A DNA stretch of 57,561 nucleotides, taken from contig NW_005434443.1 of assembly GCF_000315625.1 (NCBI RefSeq), positions 1-57,561 on the forward strand, given 5' to 3'. The DNA is from Guillardia theta CCMP2712 (taxonomy: Eukaryota > Protista > Cryptophyta). Positions within the stretch are counted from its first letter, which is position 1. Every line of letters begins with the position of its first letter. Shown in pieces: positions 1 to 50,851 of the stretch. The translations under genes and the position numbers were made by a program. The notes under the pieces are model-generated. The model worked only from the letters and a program-made list of their open reading frames with translations. It was not told where the DNA came from and ran no database searches.

Positions 1-1031
1 TCGCTGAACAGAGTCAGGTGTACTCCCTCCATCGCTTCGCTCTCTCGGAAAGCTCGAAATGCTGTATCATTCGCCTCTGGGCAGCTCGAGGAGACGATGC
101 ACTCCACCTCCCTCTGTCTCCAGATGACGTTGGCCCCTACAGCGATGAAGCCTTTCTGACCTAAGCCTTTGTGGACTTGCTGTCCTGGCGCCCCAGCGAC
201 CAGCATGCCTGCCAGCGGCTGGAGTTGGACCGCTGCAAGGGACTGGCGCAGCAGCTGATAGCGATAGACGGCAGCTATCTCAGCCGTTGTCATGCCGCCC
301 AAGGTTAGCAGGTGAGTCAGCTCTGCCAAGCTGCCCCCTTTGCCCCAGGGTCCTCTCTTGGCTCGAATCTTGAAAGATCGATCGTGCACGATGCTCACAT
401 GTACAGCTGTGAACTTGCGACCATCGATCGCGAAGTCCTCTCTTCCCTGCCAGAGCTTCTCCGCTTGTGCATTGCGGAGGAAGGAAACAGTCACCGGGAT
501 CTCCTCAGCACTCGCTATCTCGGGTCTATACGGAGCCTTCCACATGATTGCTTTACTCTCTTGCACTGAGTCTACGATCAGTCCGATCTCTTCAAATTTC
601 TTCTTCAGCTTTTCTTCATGGTTGACATACACCGAGGAGATGCCCAGGAGAGTCATGGAGATGAAGGAAGTCACCTCGTTGCCTGCTGAGGCGGTGTATG
701 TCTCGACCTTCTCCTTCTTGGCTTCTTCAATCTGCTGCATAAACCACTCTCTGGATGCGTCACTCCATCCAGTCATCGCTTCTTGCAGAAACTCACGTCG
801 TGCCTGCTGACATGTCGAGCGGATGGCTTCTGCGATAGCGTCGGGGGTGCATCCCTCCACAGCCTTGCAAGCCTGGGCTGTCCTGCTGTTCGGATAACGC
901 TTCGCGAAGCTCTTCACCCTCTCGACGAGATCAGCTTCGAGGACAGAGGCATCCACAAGTCCGCTCTGCGTGTATTGGCATGATCTCCGATACAGCAGGT
1001 TGCGAACATTTTCATCATACTGAAGAACCAT
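1..1031 (-). CDS. ORF1 protein of family B element (partial; continues beyond the window start)
   Basis: Minus-strand frame from ATG at 1031: MVLQYDENVRNL...QQIEEAKKEKVETYTASAGNEVTSFISMTLLG... It is in frame across the segment deleted in the 12309-14123 copy. Confidence 0.7.
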   Translation of the reverse strand, partial: MVLQYDENVRNLLYRRSCQYTQSGLVDASVLEADLVERVKSFAKRYPNSRTAQACKAVEGCTPDAIAEAIRSTCQQARREFLQEAMTGWSDASREWFMQQIEEAKKEKVETYTASAGNEVTSFISMTLLGISSVYVNHEEKLKKKFEEIGLIVDSVQESKAIMWKAPYRPEIASAEEIPVTVSFLRNAQAEKLWQGREDFAIDGRKFTAVHVSIVHDRSFKIRAKRGPWGKGGSLAELTHLLTLGGMTTAEIAAVYRYQLLRQSLAAVQLQPLAGMLVAGAPGQQVHKGLGQKGFIAVGANVIWRQREVECIVSSSCPEANDTAFRAFRESEAMEGVHLTLFS

Positions 1032-1121
1032 ACTTAGAAAGCTATTTGAAGTATACAAACCTCTTGCTTGCAGCTTCCTTGGCGCCCTGGCGGCTTCCCC
1101 TACACCTGACGAGGAGCCATG

Positions 1122-1184
1122 CTGCCGAAAATAACGGCGCCTCTGCCGAAAATAACGGCGCCTCTGCCGAAAATAACGGCGCCT
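1122..1184. repeat. 21-bp tandem repeat x3 (CTGCCGAAAATAACGGCGCCT) at the element 5' end
   Basis: Read directly from the sequence. Confidence 0.95.
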
Positions 1185-1209
1185 CCTAAACCCTAAACCC
1201 TAAACCCTA
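1185..1209. repeat. Telomeric repeat tract (CCCTAAA)~3.5
   Basis: CCTAAACCCTAAACCCTAAACCCTA; Arabidopsis-type TTTAGGG on the minus strand. Confidence 0.97.
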
Positions 1210-1232
1210 GTAGTAGTAGTCGATTTTTATTA
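1208..1232 (-). other. Element 3' end: AATAAA followed by an (ACT)4 tail joined to AGGGTTTAGGG
   Basis: Minus strand reads TAATAAAAATCG-ACTACTACTACT-AGGGTTTAGGG. Confidence 0.8.
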
Positions 1233-1776
1233 GAATGCTAGAATAGTCGCATCGGGTACCTTCCCGGTCTAGTCTAGTCTAAATGGGTTCTCACGCTTGG
1301 CAGAGCGGCCCTTCTTGGATGGCCCGTTGTGGCATCCAGGGTTCTATCGCTGTTCCGCTTTTTCTGTTGTTTCCATAGTCCTCCGTTCCGAGCCGCCGGT
1401 GCCGTATCTCCTCCGGGCCCGGGTTGACGGTTTCAGTGTAACCGTCCACCTTTCTATTTTTTGCGCTAAGTCCATGTCCCTTCCCTGCCTGCCGCTTGTG
1501 AAGCTTCCCCATCGGTCTGTCCTCGTTGCCCTTTCCCCTGCCGTCATCCATCTGTCTCCTGTGTCCTTGCCCCTTCCTTGCCATGTTGGTTGTTTTTCGC
1601 CTGTGAGGCTTCCCCTTCGGTCTGTCCGTTGACCGTTGCCCTTTCGTCTCCCATCTGTCTTCTGTGTCCTTGCCCCTTCCCTGCCATGCTGATCCTGGTT
1701 GCTTGCTTTTGAGGCTTCCCTTGTGATCTGTCCTCGTTGATCTTTACCCAGTCATCTTCCAACCATCTTATATCCT

Positions 1777-4545
1777 TCATGCTTGTTCTCTGTTAGTCGT
1801 GTCTCCTCGTCTCCTTGAGGTCCACAGCATGTGTTGCACTTCGAGCAGCTGGATGACTATCTTGGTCATGGCTCTGTCAATCATATCCTCGTCCATGAGC
1901 AAGTTCCGGAAATTTGTGGTCCATTCCCGCTCCATAATACTGCCTCTCACTCCTGCAATGAACGTGGCTTGTAAGACCTCTGTGTTGTCGCTCCTGCTTG
2001 TCATCTCTGCCCGCAGTGCTGCATATTTCTGTTCTTTCTCCTGAAACTTTGCTTTCAGGTTTGCCAGACTGCTTCCCTCGCCCGTGAACTCTGAAGTTCT
2101 CGCTATCTCCACCAGCACAATGCGATTGCTCCCTCTGAAGTAGCAGAGCCCATCTGGTATGAGATTGCCGTGCTCTGGTGCAGTCAGTCCTAGCCCTGTC
2201 ATAGAGTTGATTGGCGTTTGCCACCAACTCTCCTGTTCAACACTTTTCTTCTTCCAGCTTTCTGTCAGGCATCCCTTGATTGTCTCCATTACTCTGTTGT
2301 GTGCCAACGCGATCATGAGCTCAAATTCTTTGCAGGCTAGCTGAACATGCACCCAGCTTTCTTCCCTGCCTTCGCACCATGGGCAACAGGGGGATGTCGT
2401 CTTCTTCCACTGGAACAGCTTTTTCCTCGTTGGTGCTGACCAGGTAATAGCTTGGATAGCTGTCCGAAGTACTGATCCGCGACACCTCTGTAAGGCTCGA
2501 CCTAGGATCCTTCTGCCCACTTGTGGTTCCAGGAGAAAGGTTTCCGTCAAGGTGAGGGGGGCTTCTTTCCTCCTCAGTTCCAGTTGTTCTTCTCTGATTA
2601 TCTTATCCCATATTTTCAATCGATCCATCCCCGGCTTGAAGTTCTCTTCGTCTGCAATGCAGAATCCCAAGTCGCTGTCGATGAGGGCCCGTTCCCACGT
2701 GGAGGAGAAGGAGGATTTTCCCTTGCGGGCTTCTTCTGCAGCTTCTTGCACTACGGTGTGGTCTGCGATCATAGAGAGGTTGATCTCAATGCCCTCCCGC
2801 TGAAATTTGCTCAGGCATTCCTGCAGTCTTCCTGCCAAGTCGTATACGAGCTCGTCTTCATACTGCATGGTAGACCATCTGAGGGTGTCCGTAAGAAAGC
2901 GATGCATTCGGGTTGATTTAAAGAGGACGAAGATTTTCCTGATTGTTTTCTGTTTGCCTCTTTGTTCCCAAATCGCTTGTAGGAGTATGCAGAGTGCGAT
3001 GGTATGTGCTCTGATGACGCTGCATTTTCCGTGTATCTTGATCGCTCCGCGTTCCTGCTCTCCTTCCTTGTCTTGCGTGCTGTATCCTATCGACATTGAT
3101 CGACCCTTCCTGTTTCGTGATATGTCGCCGTGGATTGCGGACCACACTTGGTTCCTGTTCTTCTCCTGTTTGGCCGAGGCTTGATAGTTTTCGTTTTGCT
3201 TCCTTCGGTATTCTTGTAGCTCCTCCTGTTCAGGGATCAGGTGTACTGTGAGTTGGACAATTATTCTCTCTTGTTCCGACTCCTTGCAGTAGACAATCAG
3301 GTCGTCTTGTGACTTCCTGAGGCTCCGATCGCCCGTCCTCCAGAAATTTGCAGCGTAGCATATTTCTGATCCTTTAGGTACCTTACCGACTAGCATGAAG
3401 CCGTCAGGGATTTCTTTCCTGAAGCAAGTTTGGTTCCATCCGATCAAGATTGTTCCAGACTCGCATGCGGCGTAGCTGAGGTATTGTTCCTGTTGGTCGA
3501 TCCATATTATTTCACGTCGAACCTCGTCTTCCTGCAAGCTATCGGTTGCGGCCTGGATTGTCGGGTGATAGAGGGTGGGCCAGTTGCTGAACTGTTTTGT
3601 TTCAGCGAGCATCCCCAAGTGTTCTAGAAATTCGTACGACAGCGGAAGGCCTTGTTGTCTATCTCGAATTTCAGCCATGGCGGTGGTTAGATGTTCCCAC
3701 CAAGCTTGCGAGTTGAGTGAGCTGTTATGTGTTTTGCTGATATACTTAGCAATTTGCAGTAGGATCTCTGTCTTCTCTGGGTTCTTGGCTCCATCGTCAT
3801 CTTCTTTCCTCGCAAATGGCGCCGAGCGAAGGGAAGGTTCAGCTTCTTTGATGTCTTGTTCTTGGCCCGTGTGACTTCTGGGCCGGTCCATGATTGCTAT
3901 GTCGCCCTTGATTTTGAAACTTTCCTTACCTTTTAGGATTAGGTGTTCCTGTTGATCCAGATTGCCTAGTAGTTTAGCCATGAGGGATCTTGTGTTTGCA
4001 TGAGCTGGGTGTGGCCTTCTCTCTTCTGCTGCTTCCCGATGCTTTTTGGATGTCTCCTCCCGGTCCTCCTCTGATTGCGGGTGTGACTTTCGTTTTCGGG
4101 TTGTAGCACTATCCTGCGAGGCAACCTCTCGTCTTTTCCTCTTTGTTCCTGATGCTCTGTTGACGCTGCTTACCCAGATGACATTTTCTTGTAGCAGTTG
4201 CATTACGATCCCCTCCGCCTCCTCGCGTTGCCTTGGGAAAGGCCAGAGCTTCCTTGGCAAATGCAGTTCTTCGTCAGCGATAGGTCGTATATTTCGTAGC
4301 AAGGAGAATTGGAGTTTCGGGAGTTGCCTCCATAAGGCTTGGAAGGTCGTCCAGCCTTGTGGTCTGTCGCTGTCGTTCAAGTTTGCCACCATATCCTCCA
4401 TCCTATGAAGGAGGGAGATGCTTCCAGGTAGGTGACCTGCTTCTATGTGGGCCCAGCTGATCCTCGTGTTTAGTTTTTCCGCCAGCCAGACTGCTAAAGC
4501 TTCGGGTCCCCGCACCACATCACGCTCCATAGTTCGAAAATTCAT
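1777..4545 (-). CDS. Retroelement ORF3 (C-terminal half of pol): degenerate RNase H-like region, CCHC zinc finger, restriction-like PD-(D/E)xK endonuclease
   Basis: CPWCEGREESWVHVQLAC (C-x2-C-x8-H-x4-C), then AHN, PDG, VLVEIA and KEQKY, which is the R2/NeSL-type RLE motif order. Confidence 0.88.
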   Translation of the reverse strand: MNFRTMERDVVRGPEALAVWLAEKLNTRISWAHIEAGHLPGSISLLHRMEDMVANLNDSDRPQGWTTFQALWRQLPKLQFSLLRNIRPIADEELHLPRKLWPFPRQREEAEGIVMQLLQENVIWVSSVNRASGTKRKRREVASQDSATTRKRKSHPQSEEDREETSKKHREAAEERRPHPAHANTRSLMAKLLGNLDQQEHLILKGKESFKIKGDIAIMDRPRSHTGQEQDIKEAEPSLRSAPFARKEDDDGAKNPEKTEILLQIAKYISKTHNSSLNSQAWWEHLTTAMAEIRDRQQGLPLSYEFLEHLGMLAETKQFSNWPTLYHPTIQAATDSLQEDEVRREIIWIDQQEQYLSYAACESGTILIGWNQTCFRKEIPDGFMLVGKVPKGSEICYAANFWRTGDRSLRKSQDDLIVYCKESEQERIIVQLTVHLIPEQEELQEYRRKQNENYQASAKQEKNRNQVWSAIHGDISRNRKGRSMSIGYSTQDKEGEQERGAIKIHGKCSVIRAHTIALCILLQAIWEQRGKQKTIRKIFVLFKSTRMHRFLTDTLRWSTMQYEDELVYDLAGRLQECLSKFQREGIEINLSMIADHTVVQEAAEEARKGKSSFSSTWERALIDSDLGFCIADEENFKPGMDRLKIWDKIIREEQLELRRKEAPLTLTETFLLEPQVGRRILGRALQRCRGSVLRTAIQAITWSAPTRKKLFQWKKTTSPCCPWCEGREESWVHVQLACKEFELMIALAHNRVMETIKGCLTESWKKKSVEQESWWQTPINSMTGLGLTAPEHGNLIPDGLCYFRGSNRIVLVEIARTSEFTGEGSSLANLKAKFQEKEQKYAALRAEMTSRSDNTEVLQATFIAGVRGSIMEREWTTNFRNLLMDEDMIDRAMTKIVIQLLEVQHMLWTSRRRGDTTNREQA

Positions 4546-7500
4546 TTCTCTTTGGAGCTCGAGGATTGTTTGGCATCCCCATTCCGCAAACCAGTTTTTC
4601 TCGTTCGATGTATCGTAGCGCTGCTCGCCCTAGGATTGGGGCAGGATGAGGGACCTGCAGCCCTCCATTCTCTGTTGGCAGGTAGAATATACCATTCCCT
4701 GTACTTTTGCTCAGTCCTAACGCTTGTTTAAAAGCTCTGATCCACAGTTGATCTAATTCTTGTAGATCTCGCCAAGTCCATCCAGTCATGACTGCGGAGT
4801 AGCGAAAGACGTTGAGAATTCCAACTTTCACCAGGTAGAATTTTTGCGCAGGAGTATAACTCGACGAGCTGATGTTTTTGATCAGTTCTTTGGTTTTTTC
4901 AAAGACGTATGCTCGTTCTCCCCAAGTGAAAGGGCAGCCCTTTATTCTTCGTCTTTCTTCCTTCCACAGAGAGATGCGATAGCCGAGATATTTGAACGGT
5001 TTAGTAGCCGGTAGGGCTTCGACAGGTTCCCCCATGACCGTTATTTTGTTCGCACCAGGAACCTCTCCCTTGCGAGCATAGTCGAAGCTGGTTATCTCTG
5101 ATTTCTTATTGTTGATTTGCAGTCCTGACCATTTGCAGAAGGAATCCACCACTGCTACCAATTCTCGCATTTCTTTCATCGTGTGTGCGATGAGTACCAT
5201 GTCATCGGCGAAGGACAGGTTGTTTGTTGTTCCTGTGCTGCACTTGTCCAATTGCCTAGAGAGGATGCATAGCACCAAGTTGGCCAGTTGTGGGCTACTT
5301 GCTCCACCTTGTGGCAGCCCGATTATTAGAGGTATTTTCCCTGTGTTGAACTCGTTTGTTTGTATTTGCAGTTCGACTCCACTGTTGCAGGCTATCACAG
5401 TTCTAATGTCCTCAGGATGGAAGCCTAGGCTGTTCATTGCCTGCTCGACCACCTCGATTGCCACATTGTTAAAGAAGTTCGCAAAGTCCAGGTACAAGAG
5501 AATGAGGGACGTTTTGGCCTCTTCTGCTTCTTCTACGATCGAGATCAGTCGATGAGCCTGCCGACTTGTGCTTCTGCCTGGACGGAACCCCTCCTGGAAG
5601 TTTGTGAGGACGTTGTTTGCTTCTACTGTCTTACTCAGACGATGCGCCAGGATTGCCTGAACCAGCCGAGTAAGCGTTGACATGACGCATATAGGCCGCA
5701 TGTTTTCGAGAATGTGACAGAATTGATTTTTTGGCAGGAGGCGTACTCTCGCTGTCTTGTTGAGAACCTCAGCTTTGCCTTCTAGGGCTGCATTGACTAA
5801 CTTGCCAACTTCCTCTCGGCATGCTGGTGGCAGCGCCCGCAGCACTTCGTTCGAAATGAGGTCAAGTCCTGCAGCCTTTCGTCTCGGCGCCGAGGCGAGC
5901 CAGACATCAATCTCTCCCGGTGCCAGGGGTCTGGTGATTTCCTGTTGTTGTCTCCTTGAAAGCTGCACCCCCTCAGGCGGTGTGATCCGTCTTGGGGCCA
6001 CGGTTGTGAACGACTTACATTTTGTGCAGTACGGGGTCATCCCTCCCCCTCCGATGGTCTCGTCGCTTGAGTCAGCCAAGGGGAGCATACATCCGATGTT
6101 TGAGCATTTTGAGCAGGTCCCTTGTTTCGTGCATGCGTTGACGCTGAAGAAGAATCGTGTATGGTCCGCGTCCTCAAGCTCTCTAACCTTCTGCATTGGG
6201 AGATGATCCGTGAGATCACGGTATCCTGCTATCTCCCATGTTGTTTTATCCGATTCTTCTAGTGCTACAATTGCTTTCGTGATTGTGTTTGCAGGTAGCA
6301 GTGATAGAAAGAGCCAGTCATCTGTCCCCTCTCGCTCGATCCCAATCATCAGTTGCTGGTTTGCACTCCAAAATGCTCTAACACCCCTCGTGTCTTCGCT
6401 AGATAAGGTTGCTTCGATTTGGTTGATGAGCTCGTCGGCATTGTCGACTATCTTGCCGAGCAGTCGAAGAGCCAAGCCTTTGTGGCAACGAAGGGAGTTA
6501 GGGTGTTTTTTCTTGATGTCTTGACTTATCATCGGTTCTTTGGGAGTGAAATCATTCTTGCGTCCCATTGCATTCTGGGATTCACGGCTGCCTACCGTGC
6601 CAAGCCGTGTTTGCTGTTGTTGGCAGATCTCTTGGAAAACTTCGTTGTTTTGTTCTTCACATATCGTTCTGAACCTCTCGATCTTAGTTCGCAATTCTCG
6701 TTGTAATGTAGCTTCCGTAGGTACTCCAGTCGCTGGTCTTTGCTGTGATGCTTCCCTAAGTTTAGTCCGCAAGTTGCGGATCGATCTCTTCAAATCCATT
6801 TGTTCTTTGTTCGCGTGTCGCCTCCCTCCCTTTCTGATTTTTACCTCCTTTAGTGGTAGAGAGTTGGCGAGCATCTCACAAATGTTACATTCTTGCGCCT
6901 TAGCTCGCATGTCTCGTATGTTTGCATCTAGTTGTTGCGCCCATTCGATCTTCTTCTCCTCCCACGTATCGCGATCCAGCACCCATCTGCTTTTAGGGGT
7001 TTCCCCCCTCTTCTGTCGTGTATTCATCTGATGCACTTCCACTCGTGGGATTAGCTGCGTCTCCTCGGATGTGAACTTGGTGTGCACTTGCACCACCAGG
7101 GCTCTGTGATCAACTGCTCCCCCTATCACACAGCCGTCGACCGTCCACGATTGAAGGGAGATGTTGGGGAAGTTGTCCTCATTAGTTGGGGGGTGGATAG
7201 CGAGGACTGCGTCGAGTTTGGCTTCTATCAATTCTTGTTTGTACCATGTTGAGAAGGTAAATGTTGTCCCAGTCTCGCTGATCTGTTCATATGAGAGTGT
7301 ACGGTGTGCGGAAAGGTCTGCCAGGAATTTCTCGAATCTCTCATCTGCTTTTGCGGTGATAGATGAGGGGGAATATCCTCTCCGCATTGGTGTTGTTGTG
7401 TTGGTTCTTGCTGCATTAAAGTCTCCGGCTATGATGTGTGTCTCTCTCGTTCCCAGAGCGAGGTGTAGCAGCTCTGCCCACAGTTCCCCTTGCTCTCGAA

Positions 7501-9229
7501 TCGCATTTTCCGCCGGTACCTGATGGAGGTTCGTGACTACGAAAGAATTTTTCCCTGTTCCGACTTTGATCGAAAACACTCGGTTTCGATATTTCTTTTC
7601 TTTGTTGCACGCCTGAGCGGCATGGGAAGGGGAAGGCGAGAGGGAAGCGTGGACCAGCGTTACCAACCTCAGGTCTCCTTTCCCCTTCTTGGCATTGATC
7701 TTCGCAGGCCCCAGGAAGATTCTGTAGCAGGCCCAGTTCTCCTTGATCATCTTCCTTAATTTGTTCTCGTCGCGGGCCGAGACCCTTACCTCTTGTAGTA
7801 GCACAACCCCAGGTTGGAAGGACTGGATTAAGTATGCGAGGATGTGCTTGAGAACAAAGTGATTGCAACCATTCACATTTTGTGAGATGAGGAAACCTGG
7901 GTCTGAGCTTTTTCGATGCATCTGCGCCCAATCATTGCCCCTTTGCTCCTCCTGCCTTTTCCCCCTCCGCTCCTTCCCTCTCTGGGAGGTTTTCTCTCCT
8001 GAGTGTGCATTCTCCTCCATTTCCTCACCAAAAAGTCTTGGTTGGGGCTTCGTGGTGGTCGCCTGCCGCTGGATTGCGATCGGCTGTACCTTCTCCTCAG
8101 GCTTTGCCGTCGAGGTCATCGGCCGCTGGATTGCGTTTGGCTGTACCTCCTCCTCAAGCTTTGTCGTCGAGGTCATCAGCCGCTGGATTGCGTTTGGCTG
8201 TACCTCCTCCTCAAGCTTTGTCGTCGAGGTCATCAGCCGCTGGATTGCGTTCGGCTGTACCTCCTCCTCCGGCTTTGTCGTCGATTTCAAGCTCTCTTGC
8301 ACCCTCGCCTCCTTCGGCAGAGATCGCAGAATTACCTGGGCCGTTTCCTCCATCTTCTCCAGATGGGTGAGAGCTGCAATCAGTTGTGTTCTGGTTTGCA
8401 TCAGCCATTCTTGCGGAAGTCTTAGTCTTGTCCTCGTTTCCATCGTTGCTAGCCAGTCTTGATTTGTCTCGCAGAGCAGTAGGGTGTGAAGGATAGCAAA
8501 CACTCCGCAGTTGAAGTTATCTTCCTGTTGGAAGGCTGAGCACCACTGTATCTGCCATGGGGCATTGGTCTGATCGTCAAAGATGTGTTCGATCACTCCG
8601 ATTGTCAGCTCAGCCATTTCTCTTGCTCCTTTTGCGTGCTCCCCCGTTGTTACAAGATTCCTCGCTCCCTCGATCCCTCGTGGGTCCCTCGTTGTGCTCG
8701 TTCTGTCCTCGCAGAGGGGGTCCAAGATGTACGCGCATCGCCGATCATATCTTAATGCAATTAGAATCCAGTGGTTGCTGTGGATGATAGTTGGGAACAG
8801 GAAGGTGTGTTGCTCATCTCTCAAGCTGCTGAGGTGAAATCTGTTCCCGACTCTCAAGCGGGACGCCTCGTCTCGCAGACTGGATATTACCCTTGGCAAG
8901 AAGATGATGTTCCGCGTTTGCTGGTCCTCACGAGCTCTCCCTTTGCGTACCATATGTATTGCTCTTCCTCCTTGAAGAGCCTTGCTCATCTCATTGAGAG
9001 TAACTTCGATCATGTTCTCGCATAAAAATCCGCTTACTCCTCGATTGTTCAGGGCAGTGATGCCAAATTCCTTGTCGCCTCGTTTGTCTGACCATGGGAT
9101 CTCCTCGATCCAATCAAAAAAATACAATGTTCTATCTACATGTTGCGTTTCCTTTGAAACCGTTTCCCTCTCCCCCCCTTGCCTACTCCCGGCACTCCCC
9201 CCTTCCTCCTCCCTTCCTCCTCCTGTCAT
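4520..9229 (-). CDS. Retroelement ORF2: Ulp1/C48-like cysteine protease, APE endonuclease and reverse transcriptase
   Basis: Protease: NHWILI, ILDPL, QQEDNFNCGVF (~8470-9100). APE: SQNVNG, LLQEV, AGDFNA, KLDAV, VDH (~7090-7900). RT: KAAGLDLI, LLPK, RPICV, QEGFRPGRS, LDFANFF, LPQGGASSP, FADD, KYLG, ENGGL (~4650-5900). Confidence 0.95.
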   Translation of the reverse strand: MTGGGREEEGGSAGSRQGGERETVSKETQHVDRTLYFFDWIEEIPWSDKRGDKEFGITALNNRGVSGFLCENMIEVTLNEMSKALQGGRAIHMVRKGRAREDQQTRNIIFLPRVISSLRDEASRLRVGNRFHLSSLRDEQHTFLFPTIIHSNHWILIALRYDRRCAYILDPLCEDRTSTTRDPRGIEGARNLVTTGEHAKGAREMAELTIGVIEHIFDDQTNAPWQIQWCSAFQQEDNFNCGVFAILHTLLLCETNQDWLATMETRTRLRLPQEWLMQTRTQLIAALTHLEKMEETAQVILRSLPKEARVQESLKSTTKPEEEVQPNAIQRLMTSTTKLEEEVQPNAIQRLMTSTTKLEEEVQPNAIQRPMTSTAKPEEKVQPIAIQRQATTTKPQPRLFGEEMEENAHSGEKTSQRGKERRGKRQEEQRGNDWAQMHRKSSDPGFLISQNVNGCNHFVLKHILAYLIQSFQPGVVLLQEVRVSARDENKLRKMIKENWACYRIFLGPAKINAKKGKGDLRLVTLVHASLSPSPSHAAQACNKEKKYRNRVFSIKVGTGKNSFVVTNLHQVPAENAIREQGELWAELLHLALGTRETHIIAGDFNAARTNTTTPMRRGYSPSSITAKADERFEKFLADLSAHRTLSYEQISETGTTFTFSTWYKQELIEAKLDAVLAIHPPTNEDNFPNISLQSWTVDGCVIGGAVDHRALVVQVHTKFTSEETQLIPRVEVHQMNTRQKRGETPKSRWVLDRDTWEEKKIEWAQQLDANIRDMRAKAQECNICEMLANSLPLKEVKIRKGGRRHANKEQMDLKRSIRNLRTKLREASQQRPATGVPTEATLQRELRTKIERFRTICEEQNNEVFQEICQQQQTRLGTVGSRESQNAMGRKNDFTPKEPMISQDIKKKHPNSLRCHKGLALRLLGKIVDNADELINQIEATLSSEDTRGVRAFWSANQQLMIGIEREGTDDWLFLSLLPANTITKAIVALEESDKTTWEIAGYRDLTDHLPMQKVRELEDADHTRFFFSVNACTKQGTCSKCSNIGCMLPLADSSDETIGGGGMTPYCTKCKSFTTVAPRRITPPEGVQLSRRQQQEITRPLAPGEIDVWLASAPRRKAAGLDLISNEVLRALPPACREEVGKLVNAALEGKAEVLNKTARVRLLPKNQFCHILENMRPICVMSTLTRLVQAILAHRLSKTVEANNVLTNFQEGFRPGRSTSRQAHRLISIVEEAEEAKTSLILLYLDFANFFNNVAIEVVEQAMNSLGFHPEDIRTVIACNSGVELQIQTNEFNTGKIPLIIGLPQGGASSPQLANLVLCILSRQLDKCSTGTTNNLSFADDMVLIAHTMKEMRELVAVVDSFCKWSGLQINNKKSEITSFDYARKGEVPGANKITVMGEPVEALPATKPFKYLGYRISLWKEERRRIKGCPFTWGERAYVFEKTKELIKNISSSSYTPAQKFYLVKVGILNVFRYSAVMTGWTWRDLQELDQLWIRAFKQALGLSKSTGNGIFYLPTENGGLQVPHPAPILGRAALRYIEREKLVCGMGMPNNPRAPKRNEFSNYGA
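8060..8290 (-). repeat. 60-bp coding tandem repeat x~4 (TTKLEEEVQPNAIQRLMTST) in the protease-APE linker
   Basis: Visible in both DNA and protein. Confidence 0.9.
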
Positions 9230-9238
9230 GATTCGGTT

Positions 9239-11344
9239 TTAGAGCTGAGAGGCAACCTCTCCCTCTTGGTTGCCACTCTCCTCTTCCATCTCCAGTCCCA
9301 TCTCCTCCTCTGCCTTGCTCAAGAGAAACTCAATTTCGTCTCCCGAGCCTACGCTGCCTTGGTAGGTTAGCGTGGCTGTGAGAACTAATTTATTCAGGGC
9401 AAGAAACAACAAGTCAGTTCGAAATTCTTTTTGTTGTTTCTCCCCTCCTCTCCCTGTTGCTTTTGCAAAGGCTCCCTGGCGTCTTCTTGATGCTACCGTC
9501 TCCCACGCATGCTGCTCGCTTACTCTTGCAATCTTACTCTTCAAAACTTGCATGTCGTCGTCCTGGGTTGCCGAGGATGATTCCGCCCATTCCTTCAGCG
9601 TCGGAAAACATGCATTTCCAGGAGATGACAAGCTGTCGTACAGGCCGACGATGGCTCCATCGAGCCTGAGTTTGCAAGCTTGGTTTTCTGCACTCTGTCC
9701 CTGGTTGACAGTCTCCTCCAGAACTTTGTAGATGTCTTCGAGGACCACGTTTGCCTCTGGTTCTGGGATGTTGATCTCATTCTCGATCCGTTCGAGATCT
9801 ACCTGTGCCCACAGAGGCTCCGTGGGGGATTCTGTAGCGATCGCTTCCCAAAGGTTGGCACTGCCTGGCTCTAGGAGAAGAAGTTTCCCCGCCCTGTCCC
9901 ATGGCGCAAAGGACCTGAGTATGTCGATCGCCGTTTCTTTTTCTGAGAAGCTGAGCACTAGATGTTCACCGTTCCAGCTGTTGGTCTCGACATCTTCCTT
10001 CGAGGAGATCTTGACGATGTGCTCAGCCGCTGACTCCTTCCAGCTCGCCACGATCCGTCTCAGTCCTCGAATTGTCATGCCCATAGAGAGATCCTCCCCG
10101 TCGCAGATCTGTTCAGCTTCCTCTCTGGTGAACCTTCCCTTCTGTGCTTTACTCTTGACCAGCACCTCATAGGTCACTCTTCGTGGTACTGCTCCTAGCG
10201 CGTCGGGCAAGAAGTCCAACCTAATTGGATGCTGTCTCGTTACCCTGGTGATTGCACTAACCTGAGTAGTGAACCATTTGAGGATCTTTTCATCTTCCGA
10301 CATCAGTCCGAGGTGTATGCCTCCTCCATTCCTGTCGTCTCCCTCAAACATCCGTAGCGTGGTGCTCAGGACGTCCGTCGAAGAGCATCTCGCAATCCAA
10401 TCGATCTCTCTTCCTTGTCGTATCTCGTCCACTCCGGCTGCTGCGAAAGTGCGTTTGTTGGGCTGACCTTGAGGTCTCCTCTTCGTCTTGACCTCTAGCT
10501 GCATGCCCGCTTCCGGCTGCACCTCCAACACAGCTATTCCTTGTTGCAGCAGGTGTTGACGATAGATCTCCGTAATCCCAGCTGAGTTCATGCCATTCAT
10601 CTTGAGGAGGTGAGAGAACTCAGCTAGGGCCCCCGCCTTGCCAGAGTGCTTATCCTTCTGTGGCCTTATCTTGAAGGAGCAAGGATGCTTCGAATGCGCG
10701 TTCACCGCGCGGATCATCTTTCCGTCGATCCTGAAGTTCGTCTGTCCTTTCCACAGCAGTTCTGCTGCGTCGTTCAATTGGAGTGTTGCCACGACTGGGA
10801 TTTCATCCACTGTCGGAATCAAATCTTTCTTGATCGGGGCTCTCCACGAGATGCATTTCTTGCCCTGCTCCTCGTGCACCAAGAGTCCTTGATCCTTCAA
10901 CTTCTCACACAGTACCTCAACTTGTTTTATGTACTGGGTAGGAACTCCGAGGATAGCCATGGTAATCAGTTTACCACTCTCGGGGGACGCTCCTGAAGCA
11001 TCGATGCAGGCACTCTTGTCTAGTACCTCCTGTTTGTCTGCGTTCCATGCAGAGACATACCACGACTGTCCTTCTTCCCCCCATTCTTTGATGGCATCCT
11101 CCTGGCTCCTGACTTCAGCATGTTTGCAGGTCTGTCGAATGGCTTCGGCTAAGGCGTTCATCGAGACTTCCTTGGACTGCAAGGCTCTGCCTGTCCTGCT
11201 CTGAGGGTACTGCCTGACGAAGTGTTCCAATCTTCGGATCAGCTCTCCTAGCGAAGGTGCTGAAGGTGTCGTGTCCTTGTTTAGGAACTGGGAAACTCGG
11301 ACACGAGCAATCTGTTTCCTTTCCTCTTTGGATAGATACCACAT
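9239..11344 (-). CDS. Retroelement ORF1 (about 700 aa, no recognisable domain)
   Basis: Long ORF that stops 9 nt before the ORF2 ATG. First ATG is at 11344 (the track starts at a TTG, 11350). Homologous to the family B and C ORFs. Confidence 0.85.
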   Translation of the reverse strand: MWYLSKEERKQIARVRVSQFLNKDTTPSAPSLGELIRRLEHFVRQYPQSRTGRALQSKEVSMNALAEAIRQTCKHAEVRSQEDAIKEWGEEGQSWYVSAWNADKQEVLDKSACIDASGASPESGKLITMAILGVPTQYIKQVEVLCEKLKDQGLLVHEEQGKKCISWRAPIKKDLIPTVDEIPVVATLQLNDAAELLWKGQTNFRIDGKMIRAVNAHSKHPCSFKIRPQKDKHSGKAGALAEFSHLLKMNGMNSAGITEIYRQHLLQQGIAVLEVQPEAGMQLEVKTKRRPQGQPNKRTFAAAGVDEIRQGREIDWIARCSSTDVLSTTLRMFEGDDRNGGGIHLGLMSEDEKILKWFTTQVSAITRVTRQHPIRLDFLPDALGAVPRRVTYEVLVKSKAQKGRFTREEAEQICDGEDLSMGMTIRGLRRIVASWKESAAEHIVKISSKEDVETNSWNGEHLVLSFSEKETAIDILRSFAPWDRAGKLLLLEPGSANLWEAIATESPTEPLWAQVDLERIENEINIPEPEANVVLEDIYKVLEETVNQGQSAENQACKLRLDGAIVGLYDSLSSPGNACFPTLKEWAESSSATQDDDMQVLKSKIARVSEQHAWETVASRRRQGAFAKATGRGGEKQQKEFRTDLLFLALNKLVLTATLTYQGSVGSGDEIEFLLSKAEEEMGLEMEEESGNQEGEVASQL

Positions 11345-11430
11345 GATCAAACAACCGTTTCTGCACAGAAAAATGTCCTGTTCAGCACCCTAGCTCGCAG
11401 GGATCCCCTCAAACTGCAGGGGAGGAGAGC

Positions 11431-12271
11431 ATGTCTGTTACTCCAGCGGCCTGTCTGTTACTCCAGCGGCCTGTCTGTTACTCCAGCGGCCTGTCTGTTA
11501 CTCCAGCGGCCTGTCTGTTACTCCAGCGGCCTGTCTGTTACTCCAGCGGCCTGTCTGTTACTCCAGCGGCCTGTCTGTTACTCCAGCGGCCTGTCTGTTA
11601 CTCCAGCGGCCTGTCTGTTACTCCAGCGGCCTGTCTGTTACTCCAGCGGCCTGTCTGTTACTCCAGCGGCCTGTCTGTTACTCCAGCGGCCTGTCTGTTA
11701 CTCCAGCGGCCTGTCTGTTACTCCAGCGGCCTGTCTGTTACTCCAGCGGCCTGTCTGTTACTCCAGCGGCCTGTCTGTTACTCCAGCGGCCTGTCTGTTA
11801 CTCCAGCGGCCTGTCTGTTACTCCAGCGGCCTGTCTGTTACTCCAGCGGCCTGTCTGTTACTCCAGCGGCCTGTCTGTTACTCCAGCGGCCTGTCTGTTA
11901 CTCCAGCGGCCTGTCTGTTACTCCAGCGGCCTGTCTGTTACTCCAGCGGCCTGTCTGTTACTCCAGCGGCCTGTCTGTTACTCCAGCGGCCTGTCTGTTA
12001 CTCCAGCGGCCTGTCTGTTACTCCAGCGGCCTGTCTGTTACTCCAGCGGCCTGTCTGTTACTCCAGCGGCCTGTCTGTTACTCCAGCGGCCTGTCTGTTA
12101 CTCCAGCGGCCTGTCTGTTACTCCAGCGGCCTGTCTGTTACTCCAGCGGCCTGTCTGTTACTCCAGCGGCCTGTCTGTTACTCCAGCGGCCTGTCTGTTA
12201 CTCCAGCGGCCTGTCTGTTACTCCAGCGGCCTGTCTGTTACTCCAGCGGCCTGCTCTGTTACTCCAGCGGC
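11431..12271. repeat. 20-bp tandem array (CTGTCTGTTACTCCAGCGGC) x41 plus one 21-bp variant; 5' end of element A
   Basis: Near-perfect repeats from 11431 to 12250 and a variant unit at 12251-12271. No spacers. Confidence 0.98.
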
Positions 12272-12273
12272 CT

Positions 12274-12308
12274 CCTAAACCCTAAACCCTAAACCCTAAA
12301 CCCTAAAC
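12274..12308. repeat. Telomeric repeat tract (CCCTAAA)5
   Basis: Read directly. Confidence 0.97.
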
Positions 12309-14123
12309 TCCAGGCTCCCCGGAGAGTAGAACGTGTCGTGGAGGTTGCCAACGGCCTTGTCCAGGACCAGCTTGATCGGCTCGCTCGTCCCTGCCTCGTT
12401 CAAAGAAGCTGCATCTTCGATGACTGCTGACAGCTCGCTGACGAGCTGCATGTCCTCTTGGCTTGACGGAGATGCTGCCTCCATTGTGATCCTCTCCAGG
12501 TCTGTAAACTCCAGCCACTCTCCCTCGCTCTCCTCCTGTCGCTGCGCTGCGTCGCTGGTGCCCCGCTGACCAGCCGCCTCAGAGTCAGGCTCCTTGTCGA
12601 AGCCGACTGCTTCGAGCTTGGTGGCTGCGCCTTCGAGATAGAAGGGCAGCTCCTTCATCATGCGTCGAGCATCCTCCGTGGAGCCGAGGAGGATGCATAG
12701 CTTAGACCCGTTCCAGGACTTGGTGTTCAAATCCTCCTCCATGTCGATGCCTTCAACTTTGATCTCGAGCCTGTTAGCGATCTCCAACAAGACTCTCTTG
12801 ACTCTTGCGATGGACGTGTTGCCGCCGTTGCACAGCCCCTCCATCTCCTTCCTCGTGAAGCGACCAGATGCCGCCGTCGACTTGATGATGATCTTGATCT
12901 CCTTGCCGTCCTTGCCGCCTGCCTTCTTCTGCATCCTTGATGCCTTCTTCAACTTATTTCTGGACACAAAGCGATCAGCTGTCAACTCGACTGCGAGCGC
13001 CTCTCTGATCTTCGGGTCCTCGCTGAACAGAGTCAGGTGTACTCCCTCCATCGCTTCGCTCTCTCGGAAAGCTCGAAATGCTGTATCATTCGCCTCTGGG
13101 CAGCTCGAGGAGACGATCCACTCCACCTCCCTCTGTCTCCAGATGACGTTGGCCCCTACAGCGATGAAGCCTTTCTGACCTAAGCCTTTGTGGACTTGCT
13201 GTCCTGGCGCCCCAGCGACCAGCATGCCTGCCAGCGGCTGGAGCTGTACCGCTGCAAGGGACTGGCGCAGCAGCTGATAGCGATAGACGGCAGCTATCTC
13301 AGCCGTTGTCATGCCGCCCAAGGTTAGCAGGTGAGTCAGCTCTGCCAAGCTGCCCCCTTTGCCCCAGGGTCCTCTCTTGGCTCGAATCTTGAAAGATCGA
13401 TCGTGCACGATGCTCACATGTACAGCTGTGAACTTGCGACCATCAATCGCGAAGTCCTCTCTTCCCTGCCAGAGCTTCTCCGCTTGTGCATTGCGGAGGA
13501 AGGAAACAGTCACCGGGATCTCCTCAGCACTCGCTATCTCGGGTCTATACGGAGCCTTCCACATGATTGCTTTACTCTCTTGCACTGAGTCTACGATCAG
13601 TCCGATCTCTTCGAATTTCTTCTTCAGCTTTTCTTCATGGTTGACATACACCGAGGAGATGCCCAGGAGAGTCATGGAGATGAAGGAAGTCACCTCGTTG
13701 CCTGCTGAGGCGGTGTATGTCTCGACCTTCTCCTTCTTGCTTGCAAAAGCTCACGTCGTGCCTGCTGACATGTCGAGCGGATGGCTTCTGCGATAGCGTC
13801 GGGGGTGCATCCCTCCACAGCCTTGCAAGCCTGGGCTGTCCTGCTGTTCGGATGACGCTTCGCGAAGCTCTTCACCCTCTCGACGAGATCAGCTTCGAGG
13901 ACAGAGGCATCCACAAGTCCGCTCTGCGTGTATTGGCATGATCTCCGATACAGCAGGTTGCGAACATTTTCATCATACTGAAGAACCATACTTAGAAAGC
14001 TATTTGAAGTATACAAACCTCTCGCTTGCAGCTTCCTTGGCGCCCTGGCAGCTTCCCCTACACCACGCGTGCAGCCATGGTGCCTGAAATAACCGGCGCT
14101 CGTGCCTGAAATAACCGGCGCTC
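12309..14123 (-). mobile_element. Family B element, 3'-truncated within ORF1; ORF1 is frameshifted by a 61-bp deletion
   Basis: ORFs 13690-14016 and 12296-13693 are two pieces of one ORF1. Bases equivalent to 721-781 are missing at 13739/13740. The 5' end has a 22-bp repeat x2 (14080-14123). The ORF runs directly into telomeric repeats. Confidence 0.88.
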
Positions 14124-14151
14124 TAAACCCTAAACCCTAAACCCTAAACCC
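14123..14151. repeat. Telomeric repeat tract (CCCTAAA)4
   Basis: Read directly. Confidence 0.97.
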
Positions 14152-14565
14152 AATCTGCTGCATAAACCACTCTCTGGATGCGTCACTCCATCCAATCATT
14201 GCTTCTTGTAGAAGCTCACGTCGTGCCTGCTGACATGTCGAGCGGATGGCTTCTGCGATAGCGTCGGGGGTGCATCCCTCCACAGCCTTGCAAGCCTGGG
14301 CTGTCCTGCTGTTCGGATGACGCTTCGCGAAGCTCTTCACCCTCTCGACGAGATCAGCTTCGAGGACAGAGGCATCCACAAGTCCGCTCTGCGTGTATTG
14401 GCATGATCTCCGATACAGCAGGTTGCGAACATTTTCATCATACTGAAGAACCATACTTAGAAAGCTATTTGAAGTATACAAACCTCTCGCTTGCAGCTTC
14501 CTTGGCGCCCTGGCGGCTTCCCCTACACCTGGCAAGGAGCCATGCTGCCGAAAATAACCGGCGCT
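14152..14565 (-). mobile_element. Family B element, 5' ~410 bp only (3'-truncated)
   Basis: Nearly identical to ~729-1140, has a single 5' repeat unit, and is bounded by telomeric tracts. Confidence 0.88.
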
Positions 14566-14619
14566 CCTAAACCCTAAACCCTAAACCCTAAAACCCTAAA
14601 CCCTAAACCCTAAACCCTA
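14566..14619. repeat. Telomeric repeat tract, ~7.5 units including one CCCTAAAA variant
   Basis: Read directly. Confidence 0.97.
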
Positions 14620-14945
14620 GACACTCCTGCTCGAGCGCATTAGTCGCTGCTGCCCTTGGAGAGAAGGCGCTACCCCTCCTCGCTGCCTTGTTCCCTTGCA
14701 CCCGTGTCCAGCGCTGCTCGCCGAGGTACGCTCTGAGCTTTTCTTTCAACATGTTTCGCTTCGATCCCAGCGTCGGCGTGGCTGCCCAAGCTCCGAGCGT
14801 CATGAACTCCACGTTGCCCGGCGAGCAGAAGGTGTCATGCAGCTTGCCAACACTCTTGTCTAGCTCCAGAGAGATCGGCTTGCCAGCTAGCAGCTCCTCC
14901 TCTGATGTCTCCAAGAGCATCGTCGAGAGGTCGAGCAAGACCTGA
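14620..14945 (-). mobile_element. Internal ORF1 fragment of a third related family (C), truncated at both ends
   Basis: ISLELDKSVGKLHDTFCSPGNVEFMTLGAWA aligns with family B IKLVLDKAVGNLHDTFYSPGSLEF and family A LRLDGAIVGLYDSLSSPGNACFPTLKEWA. Confidence 0.82.
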
Positions 14946-14992
14946 CCTAAACCCTAAACCCTAAACCCTAAACCCTAAACCCTAAACCCTAA
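14946..14992. repeat. Innermost telomeric repeat tract (CCCTAAA)~6.5; boundary to unique sequence
   Basis: Read directly. No further telomeric tracts were seen downstream. Confidence 0.97.
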
Positions 14993-21871: not shown

Positions 21872-24800
21872 TCAGCAGCTGCCGTACAGATGGAAGCGGA
21901 CGGAGAGCTCCAGCTTCGCCTGCTTCAGCCTGCCCTCAATCTTGGGGTTGAGGATGGGGAGGAATATGTTCTCGTGGCTGCTCTGATATAGGGCCTTGCT
22001 GAGCTCCACGCTCACGCTCCCGATGAAGTCGTCTTTTGTGATCTACGTGCCGTCAGAGCAGAAATGATAAGCAACGTGCAATATGCTAGGTACGGCAGGG
22101 GCAGGGGCAGGGGCAGGGGCAGGGGCAGGGGTCAAGCTGGGATCAGGAAGGAGGGTGGCATCGGGTAGATTGGAAGTGAAGAAGAAGATTAACTCACATT
22201 GTCCTTGTCCCACACTGTGATGACGACTGAGGAGGCTTCCGCTGCCACGTCCCACTCGAACTCTTCCTCCCACTTGGGGGTGACACTCCTCGGAATCGTC
22301 CTCGTCACGTAGGACTGGGCGTCTTCCTGCCCTGTGAGGTAGAGGATGCAGTAGGGGTCGCAGCTGCGGATCAAATCCATCTTGGGTAGGCCACTAGCTC
22401 CGTGAACGCAGACGGAGAGTTTGCCGATCTTGGAGCTCTCGGGGTGTGAGGAGGAGGCGGCGGCAAAGAAGCTCTTCCTCCTCTCCGGGATTGAGTCCAT
22501 GATGCTGGAGGCGATGCTCTCAACCAGGTCGAGCGTCCGCCGCTGATCCTCGAGCACATTGATCTGCATGAGGTTCATGGCGAGCAGCCTCCTGCACGTG
22601 AGACACGCATGGTTAGATAGAAACAGAAAGGAAGAGAGGAGGGGATACAAAACGATTTGAGGAAAAATTAATCAGAAATGAGGAGAGACGAGAGGAAGAA
22701 GTAGAAGTTTACAAGTGGAAGAGGTAGAAGAAGAGAAGAAAAGGAGTGAAGAAGAGAAAGTAATTCTCACTTCATGTTCTCCATCCCCACGATCTCTCGC
22801 AGCTCCCTATTTCGTCTCTCTCGGAGCTCAGACACGTCCTTTCCGTATCGCTCTAGGATGTCCAACATCACTCTTCGCTGCCCTTCTCCTTCCCCCGCAT
22901 CTTCGGGGGCAGGAGCGACGCTGGCGCTGGAGCTGGACTGCATGGTGAGCAGGTCGAGCAGCCCGTCCTCATCGATCTGCACGCCCCCCCGAAGGAGAAT
23001 CGCCTTTCGCCGCGCCATCTCCTTGTCAACCACCTCCTTCATGCGCTGGCTCGAGCCCCGCGCCTTGAGCTCATCCTGCAGCGATTGTCGGATCTTCTGA
23101 TCTGCCATGAAGTTGCGACTGCCCGGCAGCCAGCGGCGCGCGCCGTGGCTGAGCACGTCCTTGAGCTCCGAGACGAGGCCGGCGCGAGCGTCGGTCGATT
23201 GCTTGACGTTGGAGTAGGCCTCGACGAGGATAGCGAGGAAAATGTTGAAGAGAATGAAGAGCACAACGAAGATGTAAGACCACAAGTAGAGCTGGAAGGA
23301 GATGTCTGAAGCAGCGTGATCCATCTGCGAGGAAAATAAGAGGACAGGAGACGGAAGCAGATCCAGAGGAGGAGAAGGAGGAGCACGATGGAGAAAGGAG
23401 GAAACAAAAGAAGAAAAAGGAACGAGGCAAAGAACAAGAGCAAGACAACGAAGAAAGAGGAAGGAGGGGGAGAAGAAGGAGAAGAGAGGAGAAGGAGAGA
23501 GGAGGAGGAGAGAGGAGGAGGGAGGCACCGAAGTGTAGAACTGAGTAGTGTCCATGTTAAGAATAGTGATAGCAAGAGACTTAAAGGAACCTGAGAGATT
23601 GGACATGCCCTGAGATAAAAGTAAAGGAAAAGACCCAAAAAAAAGAAAGCAGGTGAAGATAAGAGCAACAATCACCACTGAGACGAGAAGGAGCAACAGC
23701 AACATCAAACAATTTCTCATATGAAGTCAAACCTCGTACTGATGGCCGAAGAGGAACACGCCGACGATGGCATACCCCACGAACACGATCATGAACAGCA
23801 GCAGGAAGTGAAACAGATCGCTCGACGCCCTCCCGATCGTCCTCGTCACCATCCCCATCCGCTCTTGGAAGTCCAGCGACTTGAGCATTCGGAACACAAA
23901 CAGCACGATGCTCATCCCCGCGAAGAAGGCGTACATGTCCTCTGCCGACGCCATGGCCTTGACCGAGTCCAGCAGGAGGAGGAAGTCGTACTCGGCCTGG
24001 TTGTTGGTCCGCAGCCTCCTGGCCTTGGCAAAGCTGGTGACTGCGATGGGACTCTCGAAATTAGCGGCGCTGCCTTGGCTGGAGGCGGAGGAGACTCGTC
24101 GCGAGCTGCCGTACTCGGGCCCGTAGAAGAGGATCGGGTAACCGACCTTGAGGCTGAAGGCTCGCGCCTTGCTGTGCAGCAGGAGCCAGCTGACTACCGA
24201 GCCGACGAGGAACGCGAAGTGAAGCCAGTCGATGAGGTTGAAGGGGTCGGTGAAGTAGGAGGAGGCGGAGAACTTTCTCAGGTGGTGCAGGATGTCCGTC
24301 ACCTCCATCCCCACGTTGATCACCAGGGCCAGCAGGATGGCGAGCATGAGCAGCAGCTGCCACGTGCTCGGGTGCTTGATCTTGTCCACCCCCACCGTCG
24401 TGATCTTGTACTCCCACGGGATCTTTCCCCCGACGTCCCAGGTGAAGGTCACCTGGCAGTAGGAGAGGATGTTTCTGACCGCGTTGTAGGTCATGAGCTC
24501 CACGGAGACTTGCTTGGTCTGGAAGTCGATGAACTTCCCGTCCTGCAGGCTCGTCAGCATGTCGAGCGCCTGCTTCCTTGACAGCCGCTCGTCGAAGTAC
24601 ACCTTGAAGTTGTCCGCTTCCAAGCTCACCACCACAGCTGGGCTCTTGCTGAAGTCAGAGCCGTTGACGTCACGAGCGAGCTCGTCGGGCGTCAGCTCGC
24701 CGTCCATGTTGAGGTCGAGGTGGTTGGAGTCGTAGCGGTGGGGGAAGAAGCCGTACGGGTAGGAGATCACCTCCTGCCCGCTGTCGTCCACGAACGAGTG

Positions 24801-48438: not shown

Positions 48439-48539
48439 TTCCGAAGCAAAGAGAAGGACAGAGTCGGAGCTAGGAGCAAACAAGTGTACAGAAGGAGGAG
48501 AGTTGTGCCAAGTGGAACAGAGAATGAGGCTAGAGGAAC

Positions 48540-50538: not shown

Positions 50539-50601
<63 letters not shown>

Positions 50602-50814
50602 TTCCGATGGCGTTGACTACCGCTTCCTACATGGAGCTGCTGGAGGAGATCGCGATCCTGGAGGAGGAGGGTCACTTCCGCCTGCTGTCTGCTACCGAGA
50701 ACCCGATGTGCTGGCCCGTGTGCCTTCAGAGCGGGACGGTTGCGTCTGACGTCTACCACAAGAGCCGGTGGATAGCCCTCGGTGTGGTGGAGGGGAGGGG
50801 AAAGAGGAAGCGAC

Positions 50815-50851
<37 letters not shown>

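Follow-up and report, generated by a model that had tools for sequence, protein, structure and literature searches.

Dualen-like LINEs with two predicted endonucleases lie in fixed register within telomere repeats at contig ends of the cryptophyte Guillardia theta

We analysed a 57,561-nucleotide window, positions 1-57561 of contig C231 (NW_005434443.1) in the genome assembly of Guillardia theta CCMP2712 (87.1 Mb, 669 contigs), whose first 14,992 nucleotides (nt) hold an array of retroelement pieces embedded in telomere repeats. Very probably, this chromosome end is occupied by telomere-repeat-specific long interspersed nuclear elements (LINEs) of the Dualen group, which would mobilise both themselves and, in trans, a shorter partner, the array having grown by insertion together with cycles of terminal erosion and healing.

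The repeat is TTTAGGG, the cryptomonad telomere repeat type (PMC3622300). Its C-rich strand appears on the plus strand of the window in five tracts (1185-1209, 12274-12308, 14123-14151, 14566-14619 and 14946-14992), which span 25-54 nt or 3.6-7.6 units; a three-unit telomere probe finds 15 matches in the window and 0 in shuffles. Read on the minus strand from inside to outside, the order is unique DNA, tract, A, tract, B, tract, C, tract, D, tract, E, with the five pieces head-to-tail and no spacer other than the tracts. BLASTN sorts the pieces into three groups without DNA similarity between them, namely B, C and E (95-99% identical), D, and A. The products of open reading frame 1 (ORF1) are homologous across groups (D versus C 31% identical, E=1e-62), and the translation of A is a C-terminal ORF1 fragment; the pieces represent three related families. 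All are sense on the G-rich strand with their 3' ends directed at the contig start. The repeat is oriented as at the left end of a chromosome, and the outermost piece of the array is cut off by the contig start. An earlier, sequence-only reading of this DNA had described five pieces of about three related families in one orientation, joined by telomere tracts alone, closed at 14946-14992 and pointing their 3' ends at the presumed chromosome end; each of these points is borne out by the minus-strand reading, the BLASTN groups and the ORF1 homology. The array is laid out as follows.

1-1184, minus strand: piece E, the 5' part of an ORF1-only element lacking reverse transcriptase (RT); three 21-nt 5' units (1122-1184), then an open ORF1 that runs off the contig start.
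1185-1209, minus strand: telomere tract of 3.6 units between the 3' tail of D and the 5' end of E.
1210-12273, minus strand: piece D, a full-length autonomous element of 11,064 nt.
12274-12308, minus strand: telomere tract of 5 units.
12309-14122, minus strand: piece C, ORF1-only family; 5' end intact with two 22-nt units, internal deletion, 3' truncation.
14123-14151, minus strand: telomere tract of 4.1 units.
14152-14565, minus strand: piece B, ORF1-only family; 5' end intact with one unit, 3'-truncated after 414 nt.
14566-14619, minus strand: telomere tract of 7.6 units, including one 8-nt variant unit.
14620-14945, minus strand: piece A, an ORF1 C-terminal fragment of the third family, truncated at both ends.
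14946-14992, minus strand: innermost telomere tract of 6.7 units, with unique subtelomeric DNA from 14993.

Placement of copies across the assembly shows the same preference for chromosome ends. Genome-wide copy counts derive from best-scoring matches and are lower bounds; distances were measured to the contig end faced by the element 3' end, within 10 kb of which 7.7% of copies would be expected at random. Of the 52 RT-bearing copies, 39 are found no more than 10 kb from the faced end (binomial P ~8e-33) and 48 no more than 35 kb from it, and the ORF1-only copies behave alike (33 of 40 within 10 kb, 39 of 40 within 30 kb). Under random placement such counts have a P of about 1e-30 or less, copies that share one end not being independent. 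At least 82 distinct contig ends on 79 contigs carry copies. Three contigs of 1.0-1.3 Mb (C4, C17 and C19) have arrays at both ends on opposite strands, as in complete chromosomes, and on C70 and C203 (loci L004 and L006) 280-480 nt of repeat lie distal to the element 3' end and reach nearly to the contig end. The proposal that these elements are specific for the telomere repeat is thus supported by the genome search of flanks and end distances that was to check it: most of the best-scoring copies are terminal rather than at random internal sites, and the junctions read lie in TTTAGGG repeats.

Furthermore, the junctions are in fixed phase with the repeat. At about 20 loci the 3' junction reads AATAAA, followed by a (CTA)n tail with n from 3 to more than 10, followed by the GGG of the repeat in register; the (TAA)n tail of the ORF1-only family joins the repeat in the same register, and all trinucleotide tails end in TA. 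For about 27 copies the 5' junction can be placed at TTTAG(G) to within 2 nt, and most elements start with AGG or GGCGCC. Copies are 99-100% identical across contigs and differ in tail length, 5'-unit number and tract length, which argues for separate insertions. A fixed junction phase combined with a single orientation is the mark of telomere-repeat-specific LINEs.

The same junctions occur outside this assembly. An independent JGI metagenome contig (L031), which comes from a related organism, encodes an ORF2 that is 82-88% identical to that of a second autonomous family in the G. theta genome. The contig starts with the 3' end of an upstream element and three repeat units, after which a 5' end follows at TTTAGG|A; it closes with a (TAA)n tail and 15 repeat units. 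In G. theta itself, a match to the TERT RNA-binding domain (PF12009, 51 bits) at G000:C21:562211-562372 likely marks the TERT gene, and the one in-frame TAG within it is probably an intron boundary.

Among the window pieces, RT and nucleases are found only in D; B, C and E belong to the ORF1-only family. The features of D are given below, from the 5' to the 3' end of the element. Two of them are the endonucleases, one of the apurinic/apyrimidinic endonuclease (APE) type and the other a restriction-like endonuclease (RLE).

11432-12273, minus strand: 5' array of 42 copies of a 20-nt unit, beginning directly at the telomere junction.
9239-11350, minus strand: ORF1, 703 aa, without recognisable domain.
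8450-8950, minus strand: C48/Ulp1-type cysteine protease region of ORF2; H, D, Q and C motifs read in the window copy, Pfam Peptidase_C48 2.8e-9 on homologue P0002.
8065-8284: tandem repeat (57 nt x3.9) in ORF2; encodes a linker of 19-aa repeats (..EEEVQPNAIQRLMTSTTK..) that separates the C48 protease from the APE.
7085-7897, minus strand: APE-type endonuclease; Pfam Exo_endo_phos 8e-8, 32.7 bits against a cut-off of 24.5.
4973-5734, minus strand: reverse transcriptase core; Pfam RVT_1 6.5e-35.
4597-4601, minus strand: site of a 53-bp deletion relative to intact copies, splitting ORF2 into 9229..4520 and 4545..1777.
2626-3138, minus strand: RNase H-like region, from alignment to relatives with Pfam RNase_H; catalytic E and D replaced.
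1801-2598, minus strand: CCHC zinc knuckle and RLE (PD...E.xR...K...Y) at the ORF2 C-terminus.
1210-1776, minus strand: 3' untranslated region (UTR); holds a tandem repeat (103 nt x1.9) and, towards its end, a conserved motif around AATAAA, with a (CTA)n tail that meets the telomere repeat in register.

The APE lies at ORF2 aa 449-631, upstream of RVT_1, and the motifs QNVNG, LQEV, GDFN and VDH can be read in its translation. We assign it because of the Pfam Exo_endo_phos match, sequence comparison with the PDB giving only weak matches to the N-terminal part of the L1 endonuclease. For the RLE, the C, C, H, C, PD, R, K and Y residues of knuckle and nuclease are invariant in a 21-sequence alignment, and a profile made of the domain matched the C-terminal RLE of R2 proteins in the PDB (E=2e-22). 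An AlphaFold2 (AF2) model of the RLE (pLDDT 92.6) has R2Tg and R2Bm as its best Foldseek matches (2e-8, TM 0.68), followed by viral PD-(D/E)xK cap-snatching nucleases. The claim of two endonucleases in one element therefore stands as a prediction from profile and fold, narrowed to D alone among the window pieces. With an APE N-terminal to the RT and a CCHC knuckle plus RLE at the C-terminus, D has both hallmarks of the architecture of the Dualen/RandI group, which was reportedly described by Kojima and Fujiwara in 2005.

The other regions of D are less clear-cut. Its RNase H-like region has no Pfam match and aligns at low identity, tentatively, to the Pfam-positive RNase H of relatives; with the catalytic residues replaced, it is probably inactive. 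For ORF1 we found no Pfam family and no Atlas lead, and an AF2 model built from four sequences only reached pLDDT 38 and was unusable. The deletion was defined against the intact copy on C64 and leaves ORF2 halves of 1569 and 922 codons. Intact copies lack it, so the split is a defect of this copy: uninterrupted ORF2 frames of 2482-2504 aa exist on C64, C15, C176 and C7, and homologue P0002 is a single ORF of 2575 aa.

The proteins closest to D are a Hanusia phi transcript (57% identity) and metagenomic ORFs, and a search with the C-terminal half of ORF2 returned numerous long proteins from metagenomes in which SET, Tudor, C48, RT, RNase H and zinc knuckle domains occur. In an RT tree of 68 sequences (IQ-TREE, quick search), D, the second autonomous family, P0002/P0003 and the Hanusia protein group together as a clade with a long stem (SH-aLRT 100). 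This telomeric clade is sister (97) to 42 cryptophyte-type elements bearing C48, SET and RNase H; the next branch is a Haematococcus lacustris protein with APE, RT and RNase H (94), and 18 other APE LINEs fall apart from these. The sequence-only reading had placed a Dualen-like system in an alga, and the combination of APE, RT and RLE agrees with that, as does the grouping of the RT with Dualen-type elements; the host is a cryptophyte and not a green alga. The reading had also recognised no described family, which holds for the targeting in the papers searched and fails for the architecture. The latter is on record for cryptophyte Dualen elements (Lescot et al., ISME J 2016, PMC5029228), based on transcriptomes and one Tara contig, in a paper silent on targets and telomeres, and a 2025 paper based on automated masking reports LINE/Dualen as expanded in all cryptophytes except G. 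theta.

The metagenome contigs of three more distant cryptophyte-type Dualens (L084-L086) and those of P0036 (L097/L098) showed no telomere repeats, some of these contigs possibly stopping short of the element ends. Targeting can therefore not be extended to the whole cryptophyte Dualen group, and it looks like a trait of this subclade. P0036, from an ENA marine metagenome, is one such distant relative: its RNase H is intact by Pfam, and the DNA behind its AATAAA..(CTA)n-type tail is not telomeric. This hints that the trinucleotide tail may be older than telomere targeting. A metagenome scan with the RLE alignment matched only a contig that had already been identified.

The ORF1-only family is very abundant, with 172 first-look candidates, and its 40 scored copies are 99-100% identical. 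Full copies (L088-L092) are about 2.65 kb long and comprise 5' units, ORF1, a 3' UTR of about 450 nt, a (TAA)n tail and the repeat, without RT. The last tens of nt before the tail, a 3'-terminal motif, are common to D and the ORF1-only family. A shared 3' end of this kind is found in partnerships of LINEs with short interspersed nuclear elements and suggests by analogy that the ORF1-only element is mobilised in trans by the autonomous elements. The 5' arrays are family-specific, with units of 19-22 nt in 1 to 42 copies, and begin right at the repeat. At one locus (L090, G000:C63, ~8-11.5 kb) a D-type 5' unit stops after 8 nt and is followed by about 1.5 telomere units, after which the 5' unit restarts; this aborted start could be due to a template switch, or to more than one round of joining at the 5' junction. 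We also considered whether the AATAAA/TATA-like motif in the 3' end of one element might serve the element that follows as a promoter, in the manner of HeT-A, and dropped the idea as the spacing to the next 5' end is not constant.

Pieces B and C had been taken for 5'-truncated. The reverse is the case, both having intact 5' ends and a 3' side that is cut short and joined directly to the repeat; in complete copies the sequence runs about 830 nt beyond the break in C. Such 3'-truncated ends meet the repeat at variable element positions, and 10 of 13 junctions read A|GGG. At the two truncated junctions for which the parental sequence is known (B and C) its homology to the repeat is only 1-2 nt, with one shared base at the B break and a 2-nt overlap at the C break.

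We propose the following mechanism. Autonomous elements of about 11 kb, with ORF1 and an ORF2 of about 2,500 aa, would mobilise themselves and, in trans, the 2.65-kb ORF1-only partner. One nuclease would introduce a nick into the C-rich strand; the 3' register puts it at one set position in the repeat, CCCTA^ or CCC^TA. The freed 3'-OH would prime reverse transcription, the (CUA)n or (AUA)n tail of the RNA ending in UA and pairing with the TA at the primer terminus; slippage at initiation would give the variable trinucleotide tails. The G-rich strand would be cut 2-4 nt away at TTTAG(G), as placed by the 5' register, with a resulting target-site duplication of GG or TAGG. The cDNA end complementary to the element 5' AGG would then join at the G-strand cut, the AGG start serving as microhomology. 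The outcome would be an insertion within the repeat, not onto the chromosome tip, with the element sense on the G strand and its 3' end distal. The primer is deduced from two observations: as the elements are sense on the G strand and have repeats on both sides, it should be a C-strand 3'-OH made inside the duplex, and this calls for endonuclease-dependent target-primed reverse transcription, the mode used by SART1 (PMC7265360), and not for end addition of the HeT-A/TART type. The division of the strands between the two nucleases, the exact nick positions and the UA/TA priming are inferred parts of this scheme.

Because the 3' ends point outward, terminal erosion would take 3' parts first. Telomerase would re-cap the eroded end and new elements would enter the new tract, so that repeated erosion, capping and insertion would build an array of 5'-intact, 3'-truncated pieces. 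We read the 3'-truncated, repeat-capped pieces as products of such erosion and healing because of the A|GGG junctions, the minimal homology at the B and C breaks and the encoded TERT domain.

The strongest alternative concerns these truncated pieces (B, C, A and many at other ends). Reverse transcription could have begun at an internal RNA site to which the nicked C-strand annealed through a short G-rich match, with no part played by erosion or telomerase. The local structure would be identical under both models, SART1 constructs can begin reverse transcription at internal telomere-like GGUU sites (PMC7265360), and the 2-nt overlap at the C break would fit. The single matching base at the B break fits poorly, however; A|GGG at most truncated junctions is what would be expected of telomerase extending a template-aligned end, erosion is the simplest consequence of distal 3' ends, and TERT is present. 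We therefore regard internal priming as improbable, though deserving of weight.

The remaining alternatives concern the arrays as such. They might have arisen mainly by recombination, break-induced replication or segmental duplication between subtelomeres, with no true preference for the repeat. Subtelomeres do exchange sequence in many organisms, and the near-identity of copies would be accounted for, but block duplication would carry flanks along, whereas neighbouring pieces, tails, 5'-unit numbers and tract lengths vary from end to end; the register is fixed at both junctions in at least three families and in an independent metagenome contig. This makes recombination a very unlikely source. 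Still less credible is attachment to the chromosome tip without a nuclease, by which the elements would extend the chromosome like HeT-A/TART or endonuclease-less Penelope-like elements. Head-to-tail terminal arrays with an ORF1-only partner do recall HeT-A, but such attachment would put the 3' end proximal and here the 3' ends are distal, repeats flank every element and continue for 280-480 nt beyond terminal copies, and conserved motifs are kept in both nuclease domains. An assembly artefact, in which repeat-containing reads were mis-chained at a contig end, is barely credible: the assembly is scaffold-grade, in 669 contigs, and has an N gap at 25591-25781 of the window, yet the 82 or more contig ends repeat the same junction types, which also turn up in a metagenome assembly unrelated to this one, two of the window tracts are shorter than 31 nt, and all tracts are bounded by unique element sequence.

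Several observations weigh against telomere-repeat-specific insertion with erosion and healing, or against how far it can be taken. Copies are confined to telomeric or subtelomeric tracts with four to five exceptions among the 52 RT-bearing and 40 ORF1-only copies. Non-terminal or inward-facing sequences are an intact copy on C176, decayed copies on C154, C86 and C49, and short 3'-end fragments on C3, C52 and C134; these may stem from misjoins, from old fusions or from insertion off target. The lengths of the tracts between elements bunch at a lower limit of about 23 nt, which random insertion into a long tract does not predict. The order of the pieces in the C231 array comes from one assembly containing gaps. 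As for the RT phylogeny, which the sequence-only reading had asked for with Dualen/RandI, R2, NeSL and L1 references, the sister relationship to elements of cryptophyte-Dualen architecture was recovered in a tree whose comparison set was made up of the cryptophyte-type elements, the Haematococcus protein and 18 other APE LINEs, in place of named R2, L1, NeSL and Repbase or Chlamydomonas Dualen references.

Two of the exceptional loci have further features. On C176 (~9-20 kb; L040, L015) a copy with an intact 2504-aa ORF2 lies 15 kb from the contig start and points inward. Its 3' UTR breaks off at nt 289, where unique DNA takes over, and ORF1-only copies closer to the contig start point outward. 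This inward copy could result from a misjoin or from the fusion of two ends long ago, or could be a captured end. On C134 (L020/L026, G000:C134, ~163.9 kb) degenerate inverted (C-strand) telomere-like repeats follow a fragment of an element 3' end that lies 15 kb from the contig end and points away from that end; fragment and repeats together may be the relic of a head-to-head arrangement.

The elements can be set beside several known systems. Cryptophyte Dualens (Dualen-1_GCr, Dualen-5_CCu; PMC5029228) have C48, APE, RT, the RNase H position, CCHC and RLE in the same order; in contrast to them, the telomeric families form a separate long-stemmed clade without SET or Tudor domains, with replaced RNase H residues and with a separate ORF1. 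SART1 and TRAS1 of Bombyx mori (R1 clade, APE only) likewise use one repeat position in fixed orientation inside the repeat, and SART is sense on the G-rich strand, as are the telomeric Dualens. SART1 requires about three repeats beside the nick (PMC7265360), compared with a shortest and commonest tract here of about 3.3 units. The G. theta elements differ from SART1/TRAS1 in belonging to another LINE clade and another supergroup, and in having poly(A)-less trinucleotide tails, two nucleases and a protease, an ORF1 without recognisable gag knuckles, an ORF1-only partner and a host whose telomerase appears to be working.

MoTeR1 and MoTeR2 of Magnaporthe oryzae (RLE only, CRE-like), attributed to Starnes and colleagues in 2012, are said to form repeat-embedded head-to-tail arrays with a short non-autonomous partner, repeat-capped truncated copies and variable short 5' repeats. 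They resemble the G. theta elements in all four respects, and differ in lacking an APE, in clade and in having a fungal host. HeT-A/TART/TAHRE of Drosophila share the terminal head-to-tail arrays and an abundant gag-only member, HeT-A, that needs RT in trans. Those elements, however, add at the tip with the 3' end proximal and replace telomerase, whereas the G. theta elements have the reverse orientation and sit at ends that keep their repeats, in a genome with TERT. Retroelements are also concentrated at protist and algal chromosome ends in the case of Zepp (Chlorella), GilM/GilT (Giardia) and Athena-type Penelope-like elements. Zepp differs in being an L1-like poly(A) element that nests into itself, and Athena in lacking nucleases and priming on the G-overhang; none of the three is known to combine APE with RLE.

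Beyond the array, the subtelomere of the window contains a large inverted duplication at 22511-32033, in which 23729-25309 pairs with 29598-31178 (99% complementary over 1581 nt) and 26069-26758 with 28157-28846 (94% complementary), the outer arms being weaker. The N gap mentioned above sits inside it, and the duplication could be a true palindrome or a scaffolding effect. The gene-rich part of the window (48066-57465) has many long low-complexity repeats, among them (ATGAG)x56 at 55420-55702 and, at 48.1-48.8 and 52.9-53.1 kb, 6-15-nt arrays of the GAG/GCA type.

Full-text literature searches returned no description of telomere-targeting Dualens, their arrays or the ORF1-only partner. The class of telomere-specific LINEs and the cryptophyte Dualen clade were already known; their combination, the ORF1-only partner and the record of erosion and healing appear to be new. 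Known hosts of telomere-specific LINEs are a few insects (R1 clade) and a single fungus (CRE-like). The elements described here would represent an independent origin of telomere targeting in a third LINE group, in a different eukaryotic supergroup and in a sequenced model alga.

To our knowledge, Dualen is the only LINE group with both nuclease types, and we know of nothing that has been established about their cooperation. The group is regarded as the stage of LINE evolution at which RLE gave way to APE. An identical 7-bp target at every insertion would offer a direct handle on which nuclease cuts which strand. We also put forward, as a doubtful and more speculative reading, that the elements, far from being passengers, contribute to the functioning of chromosome ends in cryptophytes: the ORF1-only element would be a semi-domesticated, HeT-A-like buffer rebuilt by telomerase and retrotransposition, the 5' arrays would stem from reiterative, telomerase-like RT copying of the RNA 5' end, and each nuclease would serve one strand. 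If true, this would be the first system in which the roles of APE and RLE can be separated within one LINE on a defined 7-bp target. Side by side at the same ends, G. theta would present telomerase and retroelements, an apparent record of erosion, healing and reinsertion, and a gag-only partner convergent with HeT-A, which bears on the evolution of retroelement-based telomeres such as those of Drosophila.

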